Shown: positions 7,976 through 50,062 of the stretch, piece after piece
How the letters are laid out: each line of letters begins with the position of its first letter
Position numbering within the stretch: position 1 is the stretch's first letter
Assembly: GCA_964106645.2 (NCBI GenBank)
Contig: OZ067042.1
DNA length: 64,000 nt
Reading direction: 5' to 3' (one strand)
Origin: Podarcis pityusensis
Taxonomy: Eukaryota
Translations under genes and position numbers: made by a program
The notes under the pieces: generated by a model
Told to the model about the DNA's origin: nothing
Seen by the model: only the letters and a program-made list of their open reading frames with translations
Databases searched by the model: none

Positions 7976-8837
7976 AGAAAGTCGCCATAAGACCTTCAGG
8001 TATAAGGCAACATAGAAAGTTAATAATAAATAATAATTTAAAGCAGGGGATTCACGGGGTAAAAGAACTTAAAACCAAAGAATTGCCAGTGTGATACAAT
8101 GCAGGGGCTGTCATGATCCATTTCACAATGTCCATATTGAGTAAACACTTTGCACAATGCTTTTGGAGCAGAAGGAATTAAGCTTGCTACACAAATCTAA
8201 AGCAAATGTAGCCCTTTTAAACTGCATGTTTCATGAATGACAGGTCATGAAGCTGTTCAGAGCTCTCTCTTGTCTGGACCATCTGGGATAGGGTTTCCAT
8301 CCAGAAATAATTTTTACAGGCCAGGATTTCACGTTCTTGTTTGGTTGCCAGAACTGTGGAACTAAAAAGGCCATTAAAAATCCAGCTGTATACGTATTTA
8401 CTGCCATAATGCACGCGTGTGTACTAAGGAGTCGCTTGGGAACAGCTGCCTTTGCAAAATAGTACACTTTTGCAAGTGCAGTAACTGCTATCATAGGTGC
8501 AGTGCATTGCCATGGGAGATGTGCCATTTTAGTGACATGCACAGATGAGTGTGCATGTGCAAATGACAGCTTCATGAGTTGGAGTTCTGAAGGGGGTTGC
8601 AGAAGAGGACCAAAAAGGTTGTGGGAGACAGGTGAAGACATCCCTGGCTCAACTCTGATGTGAAGAACAGTGTGCAAAGGTGGCGTGGAATGCAGCAGGG
8701 GAAAATGACATTGCTGCATTTTAAGGTTACAGTCATATTAACAGCTTAAACAGTTGAATAATCTCTAGCCAGGTGGAGGAACATTCTCTTCACTAAGGAA
8801 AGGAACTGTTCATATTAAAGGACACTTTGCCTTAGGT

Positions 8838-8973
8838 CATGCTTCCTCAACCTCGGCCCTCCAGATGTTTTTGGTCTACAACTCCCATGATCCCTAGGTA
8901 GCAAGACCAGTGATCAGGGATGATGGGAATTGTAGTCTCAAAACATCTGGAGGGCCGAGGTTGAGGAAACCTG
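8838..8973. mobile_element. hAT-type MITE
   Basis: Long terminal inverted repeats (TTCCTCAACCTCGGCCCTCCAGATGTTT / AAACATCTGGAGGGCCGAGGTTGAGGAA). Same family as 36410 and 49927. Confidence 0.85.
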
Positions 8974-8996
8974 TCTTAGTGTTGAGGAAACCTGTC

Positions 8997-9765
8997 TTAA
9001 CAGGGAGAAATGTAAAGTATTGCACTTGGGCAAAAAAAAATGAGAGGCACAAATACAAGATGGGTGACACCTGGCTTCAGAGCAGTACATGTGAAAAGGA
9101 TCTAGGAGTCTTGGTTGACCACAAACTTGACATGAGCCAACAGTGTGACGCGGCAGATAAAAAAGCCAATGCAATTCTGGGCTGCATCAATAGGAGTATA
9201 GCATCTAGATCAAGGGAAGTAATAGTGCCACTGTATTCTGCTCTGGTCAGACCTCACCTGGAGTACTGTGTCCAGTTCTGGGCACCACAGTTCAAGAAGG
9301 ACACTGACAAACTGGAACGTGTCCAGAGGAGGGCAACCAAAATGGTCAAAGGCCTGGAAATGATGCCTTATGAGGAACGGCTAAGGGAGCTGGGCATGTT
9401 TAGCCTGGAGAAGAGGAGGTTAAGGGGTGATATGATAGCCATGTTCAAATATATAAAAGGATGTCACATAGAGGAGGGAGAAAGGTTGTTTTCTGCTGCT
9501 CCAGAGAAGCGGACACGGAGCAATGGATCCAAACTACAAGAAAGAAGATTCCACCTAAACATTAGGAAGAACTTCCTGACAGTAAGAGCTGTTCGACAGT
9601 GGAATTTGCTGCCAAGGAGTGTGGTGGAGTCTCCTTCTTTGGAGGTCTTTAAGCAGAGTCTTGACAACCATATGTCAGGAGTGCTCTGATGGTGTTTCCC
9701 GCTTGGCAGGGGGTTGGACTCGATGGCCCTTGTGGTCTCTTCCAACTCTATGATTCTATGATTCT
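8997..9765 (+). mobile_element. 5'-truncated young CR1 LINE (end of ORF2 and 3'UTR)
   Basis: [48 protein letters not shown] motifs; (ATTCTATG)n 3' tail. Confidence 0.95.
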
Positions 9766-10589
9766 AGGTAGTTCCAGGCTTGTCTACTGTACTTTGAAAG
9801 GAACTCTGCATCTGCTACAAGGCACTCAGTCTACAGTGCCAGGGTTTTTTAAAACAGAAAGGTGACAAATCATAACCTAGGAACATTTTCATGTTGCAGT
9901 GAGGAAAATACAATTCATTTCCAAGTTCTCAAAAACTCATTCTGATTCATGTTCACTTCATGATCTGATTGCCAAATATTAATTGAAGGGCATTCTGCAT
10001 TATCTCAAGATTAGCTTTAGCGTGATTTTAAAATTTACTCTTATCAACCTCATTCTTTACGTTAATCAAACTAAAACCCAGCCGAACTGGCTAATAGGGT
10101 CACCCAAAATAACAGCAGAGACATCTGGCAGTATCAACTGATTCACAGTTCACTGTTCTCTTTAGCTACATGGTAACACGGGTGATGTTCATTGCATTCA
10201 AATGAGGCAGCCTTACTGTCATCAAATATTCTTCTCACAGCACCATCTTGCTGGCCAACAGTTTATGCATTCATTAGAAAAATCTGCTGTATCCAGTTTT
10301 CTTGATGCACTAAAAACAGAAGTGCAGAATGAATGTTTTTGCTAAGTCAGATACAAACCTTGCTGTTTCTAACGAGCAACTTCAGTAAGCAGTAAACTCT
10401 AAACAGCTTCCACCTTATCCTCATACTTATATCAAAAGCAACATTACTGACCGACTGGTTTTCAAGCAGCCTGACTGGGTATTTTTTCTCACTTGGCTAG
10501 CTATGCGTGTGTGTGTTATTTTTGTAATATACGTTCAAGTCAATTTCAGTATTAGGAAAGGAGCAATTTAGATTTGTACACATTTACAT

Positions 10590-28238: not shown

Positions 28239-30682
28239 GTTGGTGGGCTTCATTTCTGAGCAGAGGTGCTGCAGTATCTGCTCAGCGCCTGTCCTAACCT
28301 AAGCACATAGGCTATGCTGTTGGTTATGATTGCTACTATCTGCCCTGCTTGATCTGGCATATGGCCTTTTTAAAGTACAAAATATTAGAGGTTACTGCCC
28401 ACACACTTCTGATGTGCTTTTCTGCTTGTGTGGTGGCACCTCAGTAAAACCACTTCTTACTGTTTGTAGCAGAGTTTTCCCCATAAGCAGAGGACAAGAA
28501 CACAAAACTCCACTGGAAGACACATAGCACTGTCAGCCTGCAAGTCAGTCCTCCTGTAATTAATCTAAATGCCTCGCTGATTATTTTTGTCTGTTTTACA
28601 GTTACTTCTCAAGTTTTCAATACACTGCCTGGGGCTAGTGTAAGTTGTCCCCCATTCCAGCTTTTATCCTTTTTGCTCTCTCTGACATCAGAGGAGCACA
28701 ATCTCAAGGAAGACGTTTATTGGGTCAGATCTCCCTCTCCTTTATCTCCACCATCTCTCCTCCATGCCCCGGAATGGCCTCCCAGGGACTACCATACTGT
28801 GGCCCAAATATTATGTGGAGTGAGCGGAGGAAGAGAAATCAGGCAGCTACTTCAAGTGACAGCAACACGTTGGCCATGAGCTTCCAATTAAGCTCCAGTG
28901 GCAGTCCAATGCATACATGTGACGGACATATAAATTGCATCAATCTTTTAAAGTGGCAATCCTATATTTAGTTGAGTGGGAGTAAGTACCATTGAACTCA
29001 ACAGGACTTACATTTCAGAAGATTATATATAGGATTGTTCTGGAAGAGCGAAAGAGCTCAGCTGCAGTTGAGTAGCAAGTTAATTGTTTTGGCTGAAAAG
29101 AAGAAAAATTGAGCCCTTTTTCCATAGGCAGACTAATCCTCTCATTACTGAGTAAGAACAGAATGAGTGTGGGTGTACAAGGGATCAAACAAGGGAGGAG
29201 AAAGCTCTATCAGCTTTACAGCACCGTGCTGAATGAGATAACTAGTTACTAAAGCAACAAAGGCTTTGCTTGGTTTTTAAAAACACATTTAAAAAAATAA
29301 AAAGATACAGGATTCTAGTAAACAAAGTTCTACTCAGAGTAGACTCACTGAAATTAATGAACCAAGTTAGCTGTGTCTACTCTGAGTAGGGCTAGTGTTG
29401 AATGCCAACCATGCCTTGCATTTTCTTTCTTACAAATAAAAAATGTCCATTAATACAAATTCGCACAGCAGTCATTGCGTCCTTGTGACTATGGGTTAGT
29501 CCATTCTGGTGTTTAATGTGGATAGCAAGCTTCCTATAGCACCATGTTTTCTCAAACAAGGATACCTGAAAAGGATATCCTGACCGGTGGGGGGGAGGCA
29601 GAGTGCAGGAAGGCAGTGATTTGGAGAACATTATACGAATAACAAAAAATAATAATGGTGGTCCAGGAATCTTACTATTCACACTGAAGATCAGCATGGA
29701 TAAGGTCCTACAGCTTAAAAAAAAGGTGGTCTGATTGCGGGAGGAAATAATACCTGAGTCCCTGAACCATAGGTTTGTGCTGATGTGGAGATGCAGCCTT
29801 AAAGTGCTATGGAAGTATGAAACAAAGCAACAGGAACTATCAAAGGCAAGCCATTGTATTTGAAAAGCTTGATTGCTGGGTGATCATATTTATGCAACAT
29901 TCCACAGCCCTGAAATTTCCCTTTCAGAGGCATTTCAAATTACAGCAATAGGAGAGAGGCTCTGCTCAGTAACAATTACGCTTTGGAAAGCAAAAGAAAA
30001 GAAATCATTTACAAGGGTGCCAGCACAAAAACTGCACCCTTCAGGTGAGGTTGGGGTGACTGAGGGCCTTTGAAGAGCTATGCCTCTCAGCCAAATAGAT
30101 TGAAAAGTATTGATGAGAAAGGCAAAACCCAGAAAAAGGCTGCATTTGAAGACATTTGCTCTGCCTCTTCCTATTGAATGCCACATTAATCTCTCTCTGG
30201 TGTGTGTGGGGGGGGTGTATTTAAAAAACCAATTTTCTTACCATTTTGCTTTTAGGAAGGTTCAAGGAACAAGGAGGAACATACAACACAGTACGGTACA
30301 TGTATCCCAAAGCAAACATTTATAATCCTGCCCTCCCCTTAAAAATACATGTAGCTATGGATTTTATTCCATCAGAAGGCTGCTTCACTACAGGAAGCAG
30401 TGGAGGAGACGACAGCCTCCACCTAATAATGCAGCCTGTGAAATCATGTGCACAACAGACCAGCACCCCATCGTCTGCACATACAGTCAATATCTGGAGG
30501 AGAAAAAGTGTATATACACAAAATCATATACCTCTAGATAGCATGGGGACTATGTTGGGCAAATGATATTTTTCACTGCAAACAGGAACAACATGTTGTT
30601 TCTGTGAGCATGGGAGGGGTTGATGGGCATGCCTTGTAAGAAAATGGGAGCACTCTGCTCCTGCTTCAAAAGAGGAAGCCGG

Positions 30683-30756
30683 TGGCTCCACTAGGAGTCG
30701 AACCCAGGATCTCCTGCTCACAAGAAAGGTGCTTTAGCCAACTAAGCTATTCTGCC
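30683..30756 (-). pseudogene. tRNA-Thr(TGT) pseudogene (mirror of 21449-21522)
   Basis: Same lesions plus two further substitutions. Confidence 0.72.
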
Positions 30757-30869
30757 TGGTTAGCAGTTCTATTTCCTACTCCACACAGGCTCTAAGCAAG
30801 ATGCAATAGGCTGATCTGTCATCTTGCTCTGCCTTCTAGAAGCTGTTTGAAGGCAGTTGTGCCATCCCA

Positions 30870-30941
30870 GCCGTGATCGTATAGTGGTTAGTACTCTGCG
30901 TTGTGGCCGCAGCAACCTCGGTTCGAATCCGAGTCACGGCA
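30870..30941 (+). tRNA. tRNA-His-GTG: tRNA-His(GTG)
   Basis: Canonical vertebrate His sequence; TTTT terminator at ~30955. Confidence 0.97.
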
Positions 30942-31268
30942 GGAACTTGCAACTTTTGTGGATTTCTTTTTCCTGCCTCAGGGAATAGACTTTGGCCAGT
31001 TAAGGCGAATCTGACCACTGCTTTTCTTGTTTCTACTCTGTAGCACCCATCCACTATCCTTCTGCAGTGCGGCTGTCTTTTCTTGAAGAATTTTGGGTTT
31101 GGAATAATCTCCCCTTTTTGCCTACTTCATGCTTCAGATCATGTGTTGCTTCTTTCTCTGTTGGATCTCATCTGATTGGAAATATTTCCATGGATTGGCT
31201 GGATTGGCTGGATTCCCCAGAGTGGCTGGGGAAACAACTCAGCCAGATGGGTGGGGTATAAATAATAA

Positions 31269-31310
<42 letters not shown>

Positions 31311-31926
31311 TTATTAGTTTTTAGGTGATTGGGTTCATTTGGCTTAATTGACATTAGCTTGTATGTTGAAACATTGGATTTAATCTAATTGGCAATGGTT
31401 TATTCTTGAATTTGGGCTCTTTGGTTGCATTGGTGTTTGCAGTGGGGCAAGAGAACACATTAAGGTCATATTATGTAACCCTGAGGAACTTCAAGGTTGC
31501 ATGCATACAAGAGTCATCACCTACAGCCACAGGCTGGCAGGGGGCAGGTGTTCTGGGTTGTCCACAGGGATGAGCAGGTACACTAAGGTGAACACAGTGT
31601 ACTTCTCCTCCCCCACATACCTAAGGCTTACCTGGGGGGGGGGGAGTAATGCAGTCCTTGGTTAGGAAACAGGTGTGATGACATACCCAGGAGATGTGAG
31701 TGGCTTGCTTCTCCCTTATACGATGAACAAACTCACCTGCCCTTCATCCAATATGTAGGCTCTCAAGTCTTCTTCAGGGGTGTGAGCACAAATGCGTGGG
31801 ATGTTTCTTTTCCACAGCACGCAAGCAGGCATCTCCGTGGGCCTTCTGCAGCCATAGGGTGGCTGTACTGAACACCACTGGCCACCAAAGGAAAGCACTG
31901 CGTTCTGCCTCAAAACAAAGAAACAG

Positions 31927-32001
31927 AGGCACCACTGGGACTCAAACCCAGGGTCTCCTGCTTACCAGGCAGGTGCTTTAGCCAGCTAAGCTATTGGGTC
32001 C
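31927..32001 (-). pseudogene. tRNA-Thr body with GGT anticodon (mirror of 20189-20263)
   Basis: Reverse complement of the left copy. Confidence 0.7.
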
Positions 32002-32121
32002 TGCTCAGCAGCTCTTTCGATCCCTGCTTGCCACAAGCTTTGAGCAAGCAACTTACAGACTGACATTTCAGCTATCTGCTTTCAGAAGACCCAGCTGCTT
32101 GAAGAGGGTCATGCCAGCCCA

Positions 32122-32193
32122 GCCATGATCGTACAGTGGTTAGTACTCTGCACCGGGACTGCAGTAACCTCGGTTCGAATCCGAGTCATGGCA
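32122..32193 (+). tRNA. tRNA-His-derived gene with GGG (Pro) anticodon, full cloverleaf
   Basis: GCCATGA TC GTAC AGTGGTTA GTAC T CTGCA CCGGGAC TGCAG TAAC CTCGG TTCGAAT CCGAG TCATGGC A; all four stems Watson-Crick paired. Confidence 0.7.
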
Positions 32194-32704
32194 GGAACAA
32201 GCAACTTTTGTGGATTTCTTTTCCCACCACAGGAAGTTGGAAAAGGCCTTCTGCAAACCCGATTGAGATGCACCTCAAGGGCCAGGGCCACACGTAGGGA
32301 ACAAACCCAGACTCAGACTTCAGCCACCATAGCTGCAGTACTTAATCCTGCAAAACTGTCTAACAAGAGAAAGGAGTGAAGTGGTACATTAGTAGTGTGT
32401 TCTCCCTTCTGCCAGGCAGGTTCGTGGCAAGTCCCTTTGGATGTGGGTGGCACAACCATTTGAAATGCAGAATAGACCCCCAGTTGGAATGATTCTACCT
32501 TGGGATCTCAGAGAAGCTCTCATCACAACTGGCTGCTCATTTAGATTTAATATTTGTTGGGATGGCTGCAGCTCTAATATTCCTTCACAAAGTCGCCCGG
32601 GGAAACTTTTTGTCCAGCTAGCCTATGGCAACACAACCAGCTGCTATTCCCTCTCTGCAAGAATGAAAGTTCCCCCCACCCCACAAAACCTGGCTGTGCA
32701 TCAG

Positions 32705-33247
32705 TGTGGTGTTTGCCCTCCTGTGTGTGTGACATCATACTGGGATCATAGGGAAAGGGTTAACTAATTGTAAAATGACTAACCAATGGGAACCCAGGGG
32801 GCAGAGTTAACTGGGTATAAGTTTTAAGCACAAAGGTTTTTAGGGAGTTATAGTTATTGAGGAGACAGTCTGGAGTTAAAAGAGACAAAGAAGATAAGTC
32901 TGTGGGTTGGGCTAGTCTGGTGTGAGAGAGTGAGAGAATTTGTTAAGAGGAGTCAGTCAAACAGTTGAGATAATCAGTCAGAAGGTATTAGGAAGGTATA
33001 GGCCGGTAAAGAAACTAAAGTTAAGATACTGACAGGAATATTATCTGAGAAACCATAAACTTGTTAATGTTTGTAAAATAAACCTTTTTTCCCCTTTCTT
33101 TTTCTTTTTTGGTTCACTTTTAACAACTGACTGGACTCGGTGTTTTACCAGAGAGTAACTGGTTGGTGGCAGCGGGGAAGCAAGCACAGTGGTGGCACAG
33201 GGATCAATAGAACGTTAAATGTCCGGGGACCCTGTGTGATTGCCACA
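32705..33247 (+). mobile_element. Solo LTR
   Basis: TGTGG...CCACA termini, 5-bp TSD ATCAG, internal CCAAT, TATAA and AATAAA in order. Confidence 0.88.
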
Positions 33248-33390
33248 ATCAGTCACAGCAAATGGCAAGATTTACCTTTTTCACTGCACACAGGACCCAC
33301 GGGGCATTTCAGTGTCACAGGGAGGAGGTGGTGGGCATACCTTACAATAATATAGGAACACCCTGGCCCTGCTTCAAAAGAGGAAGCCAG

Positions 33391-33464
33391 AGGCACCACT
33401 GGGAGTCGAACCCAGGATCTCCTGCTTACAAGGCAGGTGCTTTAGCCAGCTAAGCTATGGTGCC
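33391..33464 (-). tRNA. tRNA-Thr-TGT: tRNA-Thr(TGT)
   Basis: Identical to 22453-22526 except wobble base T; all stems paired; TTTT terminator. Confidence 0.9.
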
Positions 33465-33583
33465 TGTTCAGCTCCTGTCTTACTCTCTGCTCCACATAAG
33501 CTCCGTCCAAGACACAATGGACTTATCCTTCAGACATCTTGCCTTGCTATTAGAAGCCGCTTAAAGGCAGTTGTGCCATCCCA

Positions 33584-33655
33584 GCCGTGATCTTATAGTG
33601 GTTTGTACTCTGCGTTGTGGCCGCAGCAACCTCGGTTCGAACCCGAGTCACGGCA
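33584..33655 (+). tRNA. tRNA-His-GTG: tRNA-His(GTG), variant with D-arm substitutions
   Basis: His body with G10T and A21T, which damage the D stem/A box; may be non-functional. Confidence 0.7.
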
Positions 33656-33766
33656 GGAACTCCCAACTTTTATGAATTTCTTTTCTCACCACAGAGTGGC
33701 AAAAGGCCCTCAAGAAACCCCACCTGGCTGCACCCACCTGCTGGGCCCAAAAGGAACTTCCTGACT

Positions 33767-33842
33767 ACCTTGTTAGTCTAGATGTATGACTCTTGCTTAA
33801 GATGTGAAAGGTCCCACCCAGGTTCAAATCCCAAGCTAAGCC
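33767..33842 (+). pseudogene. tRNA-Pro pseudogene (mirror of 18380-18450)
   Basis: TTGTTAGTCTAGATGTATGACTCTTGCTTAAGATGTGAAAGGTCCC...GGTTCAAATCCC. Confidence 0.7.
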
Positions 33843-34041
33843 TTTACGTTGCATTTTTTAAAATTTATGCTGTGATGGGTAAAACTTCTGATTTTCCTTC
33901 AAAAAGGAAGTGAGTAACATCAAATGTCCATCTTGGCCTGTTGGAGGTTTTCTCTTATTCCTTCAGTGAGCAGCAAAATATGCTCTGTGAGCTCTGCTGA
34001 ACCACACTCATATGGACAGGGGGCAAAATACTAAATACCTG

Positions 34042-34115
34042 AGGCACCACTGGGAGTCGAACCCAGGATCTCCTGTTTACTAGACAGGCGCTTTAGCCAG
34101 CTTAGCCATGGTGCC
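34042..34115 (-). tRNA. tRNA-Thr-AGT: tRNA-Thr(AGT)
   Basis: Mirror of 18114-18187 with one substitution (G26). Confidence 0.9.
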
Positions 34116-34740
34116 TGATGTTGCATGCCTGGCCCACTCACTTCCAGGTAGCTGGAGATGAGCAGTGTGTAAGCATCATGCACTTCCTTAAAGTCTCTGG
34201 GACGGGCATGGCGTCATGATCCTATGTCTGGTCATCACTCCCAGGTCTCCTGCTTTCCAGATGCCCCTGGAGGCTAGTACTTGTTTTTTAAAGAGGAGCA
34301 TTGTCAGGTTTGGGACCCACCAAATTCCAAAACAGAGTTTATTGTGCACCTTATGGGTGCTTCAGGGTCACGTTTCAGATGTGTGTGGGAAGGAGGAAGA
34401 AGATATACCACCCACATCTGGCAGAATCCATCCTATCTCCATATACATGCTTTCTAAGATCAACATGCAAGTTTGGAAAATTCAAGCACAAGAGATATGC
34501 CACATCCTCCCCCTCTTCCTCCTGCTATGCAGCAGCGATTAAATTGTTGGTAGGTCAAGCACTACATGTTTGGAAAATTAATGCTTTACCTACAAGTAGC
34601 AAATCCATACCTTCATCAGACCCTGGAGAAAAGCATCTGGTTGGCCACTGTAGGAACCAGATGCCTCTCTCCTGGCAGCTGATGAGGTTATGGATTTTAT
34701 ACTTGTAGGCAGTAGTGGAGGGTGGGGTGACAGTACTTAC

Positions 34741-35779: not shown

Positions 35780-36940
35780 GTGCCAGAGACGATGAGATAA
35801 GAAACTGCAAAAACAACTCAGCTACAAGGATGTGAAAGGTTTGGATTGAGAGCAGATTTCATTTGGTGAAAGAGATGATGCGGGGAGGGGAGCCCACGGT
35901 TTGCTTACTTAAGGTTTTTCTCTACATTTTGATATGGCAACCCCCGCCCCACTCCGGAATGCAAGATTTAAAAATATCTGCACAAGTGAGGATGGAGGGA
36001 ATTGGAATATAATATGGAATTTAACAAAACTGGAACTTTGTGTGTGAGAGAAAGGAACTGATAGGGAAGGGGGTAAAAAATGCTATGCTTTTAAAATATA
36101 GAGCAAAATCCTCCCTAACCTCAATTATCCACAAAGGAATGAGAGATAAAGATAAATGACCATAACTGAGCGGCAGGGAGGAAAGGGGTCTACCAGCTGT
36201 GAGAATAGAAGTTTTTGGATTAACTATCTGCAGTCTGGATTCAGACTGTTCTTCCTAGGCTGGAAAAATGGCAAAGACGGTTTTTCCAGGAAGCCAAATC
36301 ATGGGACGAAACAATGCAGTAACTTTTGGAAACTGTGAGAAAAAGCTTCTTCCGATACATGACGGGAACCATCAACAGTTGCAGGAATAAAGGATAAAAA
36401 ACTATGTATCAGGCATCCCCAACTTGCAATCCTTCACTTCAGATGTTTTGGCCTACAACTCCCATGACCCCTAGTTAACAGGACCAGTGGTCAGGGATGA
36501 TGGGAATTGTAGTCCAAAACATCTGGAGGGCCGAAGGTTGGGGATGCCTGCTATATATGGACGGGGGAACTTCATGGGGGAAATTGTCACACGTAGGAAA
36601 GAATAAGGATTACAGCTAAAGTTCCTCACTTGAAACTTTATAAATTACCTGTTATACCAACACAAATTGAAATCACAAGATTGTAGCTGTTATATAAGGG
36701 ATTATTATATCTGAATGGAATGGAATGGAAATGATTAAAACTTTGGAATGCATAAAAAATGTAGAATAATGAACTTATCAACTATAGCATACGGAGCCAG
36801 TTTAATTAAATTGTATAATTTGACATTTTAATAATTGGCATTAATAATTGCATTAATTGGATAAAATTGGTATTGTTATAATGAGGCTATTATTGGCACG
36901 ATGCTGGAAAAGCAATAAAAAAAATCTATTTTAAAAAAAA
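35780..36940 (+). mobile_element. Degenerate L1-type 3' end (ORF2 C-terminus, 3'UTR, A tail)
   Basis: A-rich, Trp/Lys-rich broken frames; AATAAA plus A tracts at 36914-36940. Confidence 0.5.
36410..36550. mobile_element. hAT MITE
   Basis: TIR CAGGCATCCCCAAC / GTTGGGGATGCCTG; 8-bp TSD CTATGTAT/CTATATAT. Confidence 0.88.
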
Positions 36941-46388: not shown

Positions 46389-48968
46389 TAGAATCATAGA
46401 ATCATAGAGTTGGAAGAGACCACAAGGGCCATCGAGTCCAACCCCCTGCCAAGCAGGAAACACCATCAGAGCACTCCTGACATATGGTTGTCAAGCCTCT
46501 GCTTAAAGACCTCCAAAGAAGGAGACTCCACCACACTCCTTGGCAGCAAATTCCACTGTCGAACAGCTCTTACTGTCAGGAAGTTCTTCCTAATGTTTAG
46601 GTGGAATCTTCTTTCTTGTAGTTTGGATCCATTGCTCCGTGTCCGCTTCTCTGGAGCAGCAGAAAACAACCTTTCTCCCTCCTCTATGTGACATCCTTTT
46701 ATATATTTGAACATGGCTATCATATCACCCCTTAACCTCCTCTTCTCCAGGCTAAACATGCCCAGCTCCCTTAGCCGTTCCTCATAAGGCATCGTTTCCA
46801 GGCCTTTGACCATTTTGGTTGCCCTCCTCTGGACACGTTCCAGTTTCAGTGTCCTTCTTGAACTGTGGTGCCCAGAACTGGACACAGTACTCCAGGTGAG
46901 GTCTGACCAGAGCAGAATACAGTGGCACTATTACTTCCCTTGATCTAGATGCTATACTCCTATTGATGCAGCCCAGAATTGCATTGGCTTTTTTAGCTGC
47001 CGCGTCACACTGTTGGCTCATGTCAAGTTTGTGGTCAACCAAGACTCCTAGATCCTTTTCACATGTACTGCTCTCAAGCCAGATGTCACCCATCTTGTAT
47101 TTGTGCCTCTCATTTTTTTTGCCCAAGTGCAATACTTTACATTTCTCCCTGTTAAAATTCATCTTGTTTGTTTTTGCCCAGTTTTCTAATCTGTCAAGGT
47201 CATTTTGAAGTGTGATCCTGTCCTCTGGGGTGTTAGCCACCCCTCCCAGTTTGGTGTCATCTGCAAATTTGATCAGGATGTCCTTGAGTCCATCATCCAA
47301 GTCGTTGATAAAGATGTTGAATAAGACCGGGCCCAAGACAGAACCCTGTGGCACCCCACTAGTCACTCTTCTCCAGGATGAAGAGGAACCATTGATGAGC
47401 ACCCTTTGGGTTCGGTCAGTCAGCCAGTTACAAATCCACTGAGTGGTAGCATAGTCAAGACCGCATTTTACCAGCTTCTTTACAAGAATATCATGGGGCA
47501 CCTTGTCAAATGTCTTGCTGAAATCAAGGTAGGCTACATCCACTGCGTTCCCTTCATCTACCAGGCTTGTAATTCTGTCAAAAAAACAAGATCAGGTTAG
47601 TCTGACATGACTTATTTTTCAGAAATCCATGCTGACTATTGGTGATCACAGCATTTCTTTCTAGGTGCTCACAGGCTGTTTGCTTAATGATCTGCTCCAG
47701 AATCTTCCCTGGTATTGATGTCAGACTGACTGGGCGGTAATTATTTGGGTCCTCTCTTTTCCCCTTTCTGAAAATAGGGACAACATTTGCCCTCCTCCAA
47801 TCTGCCGGGACTTCGCCTGTTCTCCAGGAATTCTCAAAGATGACTGCCAGTGGTTCTGAGATCACATCTGCCAGTTCTTTTAATACTCTTGGATGCAGTT
47901 CATCTGGCCCTGGAGACTTGAATACATCTAAACTAGCCAAGTATTCTTGTACTATCTCCTTAGTTATTCTGGGCTGTGTTTCCTCTGCTGAATCATTTGC
48001 TCCAAATTCTTCAGGTCGGGCATTGTTTTCTTTATCGGAGAAGACTGAGGCAAAGAAGGCATTGAGGAGTTCAGCCCTTTCTGTGTCCCCTGTTTGCATT
48101 TTACCATCTTCTCCTCTGAGTGACCCCACTGTTTCTTTGTTCTTCCTTTTGCTACGAACATACCCATAAAAGCCTTTTTTGTTGCTTTTAACCTCTCTAG
48201 CAAGCCTGAGTTCATTCTGTGCTTTAGCTTCTCTGACTTTGTGTCTATACGTGCTAGCTATTTGTTTAAATTCCTCTTTGGTGGTTTCCCCCCTTTTCCA
48301 TTTTTTGTACACATCCTTTTTTAATCTTAACTCAGTTAAAAGTTCTTTAGATAGCCACCCTGGCTTCTTTAGGCACCATCCATGTTTCCGTCTCATGGGT
48401 ATTGCCTGACGTTGTGCTTTTACTGTCTCCCTCTTAACAAACTCCCAGCCATCATGAACTCCCTTTCCTTTTAGTATTACTATCCATGGGATCTCACCCA
48501 GCACTTCCCTAAGTTTTATGAAGTCAGCTTTCTTAAAGTCAAGAAATTGAGTCCTAGTATGCTTGGCTGCTCCTTTCCGCTGTATAGTAAACTTCAGAAG
48601 AGCATGATCACTCACACCTAATGATCCTTCCACTTCTACCCCACTAACCAGCATCAACATTGGTTAGGACCGGATCTAAAATGGCTGTTCCTCTTGTTGC
48701 TTCTCCCACTTTCTGGACAATGAAGTTGTCTGCAAGGCCAGTGAGGAATCTGTTTGACCTTATGCTCTTGGCTGAGTTTGACATCCAACAAATATCTGAG
48801 CAATTGAAGTCCCCCATTACTACTATCTCCCTTCCTTTTGCATGCTTGGCCATCTGTTCCAGGAAGGCATCATCTATGTCCTCCGTTTGGCTTGGGGATC
48901 TATAGTAAACTCCCACAATGAGGTCACTGTTGTTCTTCTCTCCCTTAATTTTGACCCAAATGCTCCCA
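46389..48968 (-). mobile_element. 5'-truncated CR1 LINE, ORF2 (partial APE endonuclease plus RT) with frameshifts
   Basis: GVYYRSP, VMGDFN, SDH (EN); [37 protein letters not shown] (RT); (ATTCTATG)n tail; split over four ORFs. Confidence 0.97.
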
Positions 48969-49926: not shown

Positions 49927-50062
49927 CAGGCATAGGCAAACTCAGCCCTCCAGATGTTTTGGGACTACAACTCCCATCATCCCTGACCACTGGTCCTGTT
50001 AGTGAGGGATGATGTGAGTTGTAGTCCCAAAACATCTGGAGGGCCGAGTTTGCCTATGCCTG
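49927..50062. mobile_element. hAT MITE
   Basis: TIR CAGGCATAGGCAAACTC / GAGTTTGCCTATGCCTG; perfect 8-bp TSD GTCTAGCC. Confidence 0.95.

Follow-up and report, generated by a model that had tools for sequence, protein, structure and literature searches.

In eukaryotic genomes, tRNA genes have been documented in which the anticodon belongs to another isotype than the body in which it resides. These alloacceptor anticodon shifts were called from orthologues with conserved synteny, and the genes have a stable structure with a few extra changes beside those in the anticodon (Rogers and Griffiths-Jones 2014, PMC3923123). The "impossible" G34 tRNAs, on the other hand, were engineered by an A34-to-G34 exchange in genuine tRNAs for Pro and Thr (Pernod et al. 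2020, PMC7293025). As stated for Pro tRNAs in the initial annotation of the locus described below, G34 tRNAs of the four-codon boxes are nearly absent in eukaryotes (PMC7293025); in eukaryotic systems, they behaved as toxic miscoders except where pairing between positions 32 and 38 was possible (PMC7293025, PMC8062790). A third related system comprises pseudogenes and silent members of tRNA gene clusters that evolve in concert (PMC4981973, PMC5745555, PMC6961574), where the arrays are local and duplicated, contain decaying members, are CpG-poor and share variants reticulately among paralogues. Typical tRNA pseudogenes display low scores and broken stems.

The gene considered here, referred to as the GGG gene, is found in the genome of Podarcis pityusensis in a stretch of 64,000 nucleotides of contig OZ067042.1 (assembly GCA_964106645.2), hereafter the window (Table 1). 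Like the shifted genes, it combines a body of one isotype, His, with an anticodon of another in a stable structure with a few extra changes beside the anticodon. In contrast to these genes, it was compared with paralogues of one window, and it harbors four loop changes, including the loss of U33 and G37, that are not expected to be tolerable in a working elongator tRNA. With the engineered tRNAs, the locus shares the near-absent anticodons, i.e., GGG (Pro) and, in the partner gene, GGT (Thr). Furthermore, positions 32 and 38 of the GGG gene, both C, are unable to make the Watson-Crick pair by which the engineered tRNAs were relieved of their toxicity. However, the G34 of the GGG gene was inherited from the GUG anticodon of tRNA-His and is found on a His body together with C33 and A37. 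As in the concertedly evolving clusters, the gene is located in a local, duplicated, CpG-poor array with decaying members and reticulately shared variants, but, unlike typical pseudogenes, it has kept a canonical-level Rfam score and all of its 21 pairs. According to the sequence analysis, recent inactivation of a His gene copy is the most likely explanation, ahead of the emergence of a new proline tRNA.

Table 1. Positions of the GGG gene, its copies and the surrounding array in the window.
Feature	Position	Strand	Remarks
GGG gene, His-derived and tRNA-like	32122-32193	+	anticodon GGG, loop CCGGGAC; ARAGORN, Rfam, minimum-free-energy fold, alignment
Mirror copy of GGG gene	19998-20068	-	one D-loop A absent, otherwise identical; Rfam 57.2 bits
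Thr-like head-to-head partner of GGG gene	31927-32000	-	anticodon GGT; Rfam 51.3 bits
Mirror copy of Thr-GGT partner	20190-20263	+	identical to 31927-32000
5' leader of GGG gene	32102-32121	+	20 nt; most similar to the leader in the unit at 22262, with 3/20 positions different
3' trailer of GGG gene	32194-32218	+	first TTTT at +13; kept across units; 2/25 positions differ from the trailer at 30870
Inverted duplication, right arm	30566-32358		canonical His + degenerate Thr unit, GGG + Thr-GGT unit
Inverted duplication, left arm	19833-21639		
Array, left half	17914-22613		Thr-AGT; His/Thr-TGT; GGG/Thr-GGT; His/degenerate Thr; His/Thr-CGT
Array, right half	30566-34315		mirror order: degenerate Thr/His; Thr-GGT/GGG; Thr-TGT/His; Thr-AGT

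Identity, Fold and Promoter

Both the GGG gene and its mirror copy are called as tRNA-Pro(ggg) by ARAGORN. Alignment with the canonical His gene at 30870, which we take to be the usual vertebrate tRNA-His and which has an identical copy at 21264-21335, shows identity at 62 of the 72 positions, i.e., exactly the ten substitutions that had been counted initially: G4A, T13C, G31A, T32C, T33C, T35G, G37A, C39T, C44T and C68T (raw gene positions). The alignment also reproduces the conversion of the anticodon loop from TTGTGGC to CCGGGAC and the location of six of the ten substitutions in positions 31-39. Because of this identity, and because the leader, the trailer and the head-to-head Thr partner are the same as in the other units, the gene is considered to be derived from tRNA-His. 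The spacer beyond its 5' leader is ~41-55% diverged.

None of the ten substitutions has broken a stem. All 21 pairs are intact, as had been claimed, and are of the Watson-Crick type, and the minimum-free-energy fold is a cloverleaf. A T.G pair of the canonical His gene has become C-G through T13C, and the pairs 4:68 and 31:39 have been altered on both sides, from G-C to A-U. The caveat that both of these two-sided changes are CpG transitions holds for all four substitutions involved (G4A, C68T, G31A and C39T). The promoter and terminator elements described in the initial annotation are likewise in place; the B box (GGTTCGAATCC) is identical to that of the canonical His gene, the A box differs from it solely at the variable position 13, and the first TTTT is found at +13. 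With these three elements intact, continued transcription by Pol III is possible. With the Rfam tRNA model, the gene scores 60.4 bits, compared to 60.9 bits for the canonical His gene. The discriminator base is A73, and the DNA encodes A at position -1 such that G-1 is not encoded. Thus, the gene is as it had been described. An exact 24-nt pattern spanning its anticodon arm had no match in metagenome contigs.

The gene has the His-type body, the A73 and the cloverleaf of a tRNA-His, but not the GUG anticodon. It also displays one of the properties of alloacceptor-shifted genes, in that a stable and otherwise conserved body carries an anticodon that belongs to a different isotype. Broken stems or a low covariance-model score, as expected for a pseudogene, are not seen (0 broken pairs; 60.4 vs 60.9 bits), but near-invariant bases have been lost and CpGs have decayed (U33C, the missing D-loop A at 19998 and four of eight CpGs), as also expected for a pseudogene.

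Organization of the His/Thr Array

The window contains 14 tRNA genes according to ARAGORN, all of which reside within two blocks at 18.1-22.5 kb and 30.9-34.1 kb, and Rfam adds two degenerate Thr-like copies (21449-21522 and 30683-30756). The array unit is composed of a His-type and a Thr-type gene positioned head-to-head and separated by a spacer of ~120 nt, and the order of units in the right block mirrors that in the left block. Together, these blocks make up a degenerate palindrome in which the identity of the arms varies by segment from ~87% to >99% (19833-21639/30566-32358 and 17914-18466/33752-34315). This variation suggests that the segments were duplicated at different times or that the arms have converted each other in patches. 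The (TAA)n/(ATT)n microsatellites at 20880-20936 and 31269-31316 are of unequal length in the two arms.

The inverted duplication that harbors the GGG unit is 98.06% identical over 1808 nt (blastn self-comparison, 19833-21639 against 32358-30566), and most of the differences between its arms are concentrated at one edge. The core of ~1.7 kb (~1720 nt) contains 7 substitutions and 3 indels. The indels include the D-loop deletion of the mirror copy, i.e., the A opposite 32142, the absence of which had been noted previously. Because the core is nearly identical in the two arms, all ten substitutions are older than the duplication. Furthermore, with 7 substitutions in ~1.7 kb the duplication is very recent, and therefore the GGG gene and its mirror copy constitute one data point. 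The second copy pointed out in the initial annotation exists, but it adds no weight because both copies reside inside this duplication.

The Thr-GGT partner of the GGG gene carries seven substitutions, which include mismatches in the acceptor stem at 2:72, 4:70 and 6:68 and a change of the T loop from TTCGA to TTTGA, and its minimum-free-energy fold is not a cloverleaf. Clustered mutation at positions 2, 4 and 6 of this gene was considered, but the cluster is non-significant once any position is allowed (p = 0.18). In the other decaying copies of the array (five copies), 29 substitutions have resulted in 12 broken pairs. The Thr genes at 18114-18187, 19443-19516, 20190-20263, 22453-22526, 31927-32000, 33391-33464 and 34042-34115 carry the anticodons AGT, TGT, CGT and GGT, i.e., all four first anticodon bases on a near-identical body; Thr-TGT at 33391 differs from Thr-CGT at 22453 solely in the first anticodon base. 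The Thr genes thus resemble a series of isoacceptor shifts inside one array, where the GGT version is the only one that is structurally broken.

Divergence, CpG Decay and Gene Conversion

The GGG unit is the most diverged of the array. Its spacer differs by 40-42% from those of the other units, compared to 19-28% when the latter are compared with each other, and the divergence of the gene body is 14% for the GGG gene compared to 3-4% among the others. The difference between the spacer (40-42%) and the body (14%) implies that the unit is old and that the bodies were constrained until fairly recently. The substitutions in the gene are unevenly distributed, with two in the 30 positions 1-30, seven in the 14 positions 31-44 and one in the 28 positions 45-72. 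Outside positions 31-44, the body differs at 3 of 58 positions, similar to accepted His copies.

Several segments of the unit are most closely related to different neighbors. The leader is closest to that of the unit with the His gene at 22262 (L5), while the trailer is closest to that of the unit with the His gene at 30870 (R1). Individual variants are also common to other units, i.e., C13 is found in L5, T68 in the unit with the His gene at 19252 (L2) and T59 in R1. This reticulate sharing suggests that gene conversion has taken place between the units, a process that is well known in tRNA families (PMC4981973, PMC5745555).

Of the eight ancestral CpGs of the GGG body, four have been lost by decay, which in every case resulted in TpG or CpA. 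The flanks of the gene have a CpG observed/expected ratio of 0.12-0.16 and are devoid of a CpG island, and all flanks in the array are CpG-poor (0.07-0.41). In mammals, CpG-poor flanks predict inactive tRNA genes (PMC6961574). However, the CpG context does not set the GGG gene apart, as the flanks of the canonical copies are equally CpG-poor, and the rule is a mammalian one, not validated in P. pityusensis.

Chance Tests on the Substitution Pattern

Neutral decay was simulated starting from the canonical His gene, with ten substitutions, a preference for transitions and CpG transitions weighted by a factor of 5-20. All stems remained unbroken in 1-4% of the runs, at least four changes fell inside the 7-nt loop in ~0.1%, and six changes fell in any 9-nt span in 0.35%. 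At the rate at which stems are broken in the neighbors (12 per 29 substitutions), simple arithmetic yields a probability of ~0.5% for ten harmless changes. Thus, the pattern observed in the GGG gene is unlikely under uniform neutral decay.

This departure is tempered by two circumstances, i.e., that double CpG decays mostly remain paired and that the cluster in the anticodon arm is possibly a single event. Enumeration shows that three of the four possible outcomes of a double decay in a CG:CG step remain paired, and the G.U intermediate of pair 4:68 occurs in the His copy at 19252. When the cluster in the anticodon arm is treated as one event, the other four substitutions leave all stems paired in 15% of the neutral runs. 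In addition, the case was singled out for its oddness, and some chance look-alikes are expected among many tRNA relics.

The derived arm CACCGGGACTG (32151-32161) resembles the T-arm segment CACTGGGACTC of the neighboring Thr-GGT gene (31933-31943) on the same strand, and this segment could supply five of the six clustered changes. The match is 9/11, but ~7.5 such matches are expected in the window, and the chance probability of a 9/11 match so near the arm is ~5%. A templated origin was therefore retained as a tentative idea and not as evidence.

Decoding and Charging

The histidyl-tRNA synthetase (HisRS) reads mainly G-1 rather than the anticodon, and the Thg1 enzyme, which adds this base in eukaryotes, requires the His anticodon, as was correctly stated in the initial annotation; an anticodon swap drastically reduces the activity of Thg1 (PMC3245924). 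Because Thg1 needs the His anticodon, HisRS needs G-1 and the DNA at position -1 is A, the His identity of an RNA made from the GGG gene should be lost. As for proline, the literature agrees with the earlier statement that the eukaryotic identity depends largely on G35/G36, but adds C73, and in human tRNA-Pro the identity is found mostly in the anticodon branch (PMC9976931). The GGG gene has both G35 and G36, and some prolylation of its RNA is conceivable. However, it has A73 instead of C73, G34 where eukaryotic Pro tRNAs have A (inosine), C or U, and C33 and A37 instead of U33 and G37.

In Pro tRNAs, G37 or m1G37 is general, and a G37 was already present in the His ancestor before it was lost to A37 in the GGG gene. 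The methylated base in Pro tRNAs is discussed in refs PMC9976931 and PMC8062790. One of the four loop changes, T35G, is toward Pro, while the other three lead away from a working Pro tRNA (U33C, G37A and C32 facing C38, which are unable to pair). The replacement of the near-invariant U33 by C33, also noted initially, is evident from the loop CCGGGAC, and the predicted loop is unlike that of a working elongator tRNA.

Origin and Possible Roles of the GGG Gene

From these data, the GGG gene is probably a non-decoding relic of a His gene that is possibly still transcribed. In this scenario, the head-to-head His/Thr array would evolve by duplication, decay and gene conversion, with the GGG unit as its oldest and most diverged member. 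The body would have stayed canonical for a long time through selection as a His gene, through conversion from neighbors, or both, and the GUG anticodon would have been lost more recently. From established knowledge, the absence of GUG would preclude addition of G-1 by Thg1 and hence charging by HisRS. The changes in the anticodon arm (seven of the ten) may reflect one complex mutational event or an old patch that was missed by conversion, and the two seemingly compensatory pairs would be double CpG decays in CG:CG steps. Transcription by Pol III may persist, in which case the gene would give rise to a tRNA-like RNA that is uncharged or little used and has not been selected for any role. The very recent inverted duplication would then have copied the entire unit, and one of the copies would later have lost its D-loop base. 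A relic is disfavored by the low frequency of the pattern under uniform neutral decay and by a Rfam score, a terminator and promoter boxes that are as good as those of the canonical His gene; this explanation is favored because the Thr-GGT partner is broken, the neighbors are decaying, half of the CpGs have decayed, the loop is not of the Pro type and the two copies are not independent.

The interpretation offered in the initial annotation was either an alloacceptor shift from His to Pro or an uncharged tRNA-like RNA or TFIIIC site with a preserved fold and a free loop. The His origin and the maintenance of the stems beyond what uniform neutral decay would yield are supported by the data, but C33, A37, A73, G34 and C32/C38 argue against a working Pro decoder. 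A more far-reaching reading, in which a vertebrate maintains under selection a Pol III-transcribed cloverleaf tRNA with a His body and an "impossible" GGG anticodon, i.e., either a tolerated, proline-charged G34 decoder with an unusual C32-C33/A37 loop or an uncharged RNA with a role outside decoding, appears improbable. Selection for a non-decoding tRNA-like RNA transcribed by Pol III, the cloverleaf of which would be kept for processing and stability, or for a TFIIIC/Pol III site, with an anticodon loop that is free to vary, would be consistent with the survival of 21/21 pairs through ten substitutions (1-4% of neutral runs), the clustering of the changes in the anticodon loop, the intact A and B boxes with a terminator at +13, the canonical-level Rfam score and a body that differs at just 3/58 positions outside 31-44. 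Furthermore, the existence of tRNA genes that are conserved yet seemingly silent is recognized as an open question in the literature (PMC6961574, PMC8007984). However, a TFIIIC site requires the boxes and not the stems, a D-loop base has been lost in the mirror copy, half of the CpGs have decayed, the Thr-GGT partner is broken and the two GGG copies are not independent. Among 20 sequencing runs (seven organism labels) that contain the locus, none is recorded as RNA, which is not proof of silence, and chance look-alikes are expected for a case picked for its oddness. We therefore regard a selected role of this kind as rather unlikely.

A true alloacceptor shift would entail charging by the prolyl-tRNA synthetase (ProRS) via G35/G36 and a G34 proline tRNA that reads CCC and CCU. 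Such shifts are documented in eukaryotic genomes (PMC3923123), the cloverleaf is intact, G35/G36 are the main eukaryotic Pro determinants, human Pro identity resides mostly in the anticodon branch (PMC9976931) and the loss of GUG should abolish His identity (PMC3245924). We consider this possibility unlikely given the elongator U33 replaced by C33, the change of G37 to A37, the A73 instead of the eukaryotic Pro C73, and a loop in which one of four changes is toward Pro; in addition, G34 Pro tRNAs are reported to be toxic in eukaryotic systems unless positions 32 and 38 pair (PMC7293025), which here are C and C, and the unit partner, Thr-GGT, which is of the other "impossible" type, is broken. 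Even harder to reconcile with the data is a mistranslating tRNA that is charged with His and reads proline codons. The body and A73 are indeed of the tRNA-His type, and recognition by HisRS depends mainly on G-1 and less on the anticodon, but eukaryotic G-1 is provided by Thg1, which needs the His anticodon (PMC3245924), the gene has A at position -1 such that G-1 is not encoded, and C33 should weaken decoding. This alternative is very unlikely.

A GGG RNA that is both produced and charged would constitute a natural exception both to the eukaryotic avoidance of G34 in four-codon boxes and to the requirement for U33 in elongator tRNAs, and a true shift would represent a rare switch of identity from His to Pro. 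The gene illustrates the loss of an anticodon in a duplicating and converting array while the fold and promoter look perfect. Consequently, caution is warranted in annotation, where a high general score combined with a mismatch between isotype and anticodon does not equal a new decoder.

Other Features of the Window

The substitution G4A creates an ATG in the GGG gene and thereby an 84-codon open reading frame (32125-32379, + strand) that extends across both gene and trailer and is almost certainly meaningless. Exact look-up of the products of the reading frames 32441-32764 and 32125-32376 gave no match on record, and a word search with the former did not reveal any homologue among proteins of 0.55-1.75 times its length. 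Reverse transcriptase fragments of a non-LTR retrotransposon (Pfam RVT_1, E 9e-24) are found at 46389-48660 (- strand) and 8910-9766 (+ strand), and because they share a stretch of 770 nt with 98.8% identity, they are considered to be young copies of one element. A repeat of ~115 nt, which matches itself on both strands, i.e., is palindromic and MITE-like, is located at 18681-18793, 36431-36556, 8828-8973 and 49927-50062. It displays sub-threshold Rfam matches to several microRNA precursor families (40-47 bits compared to gathering scores of 70-171).
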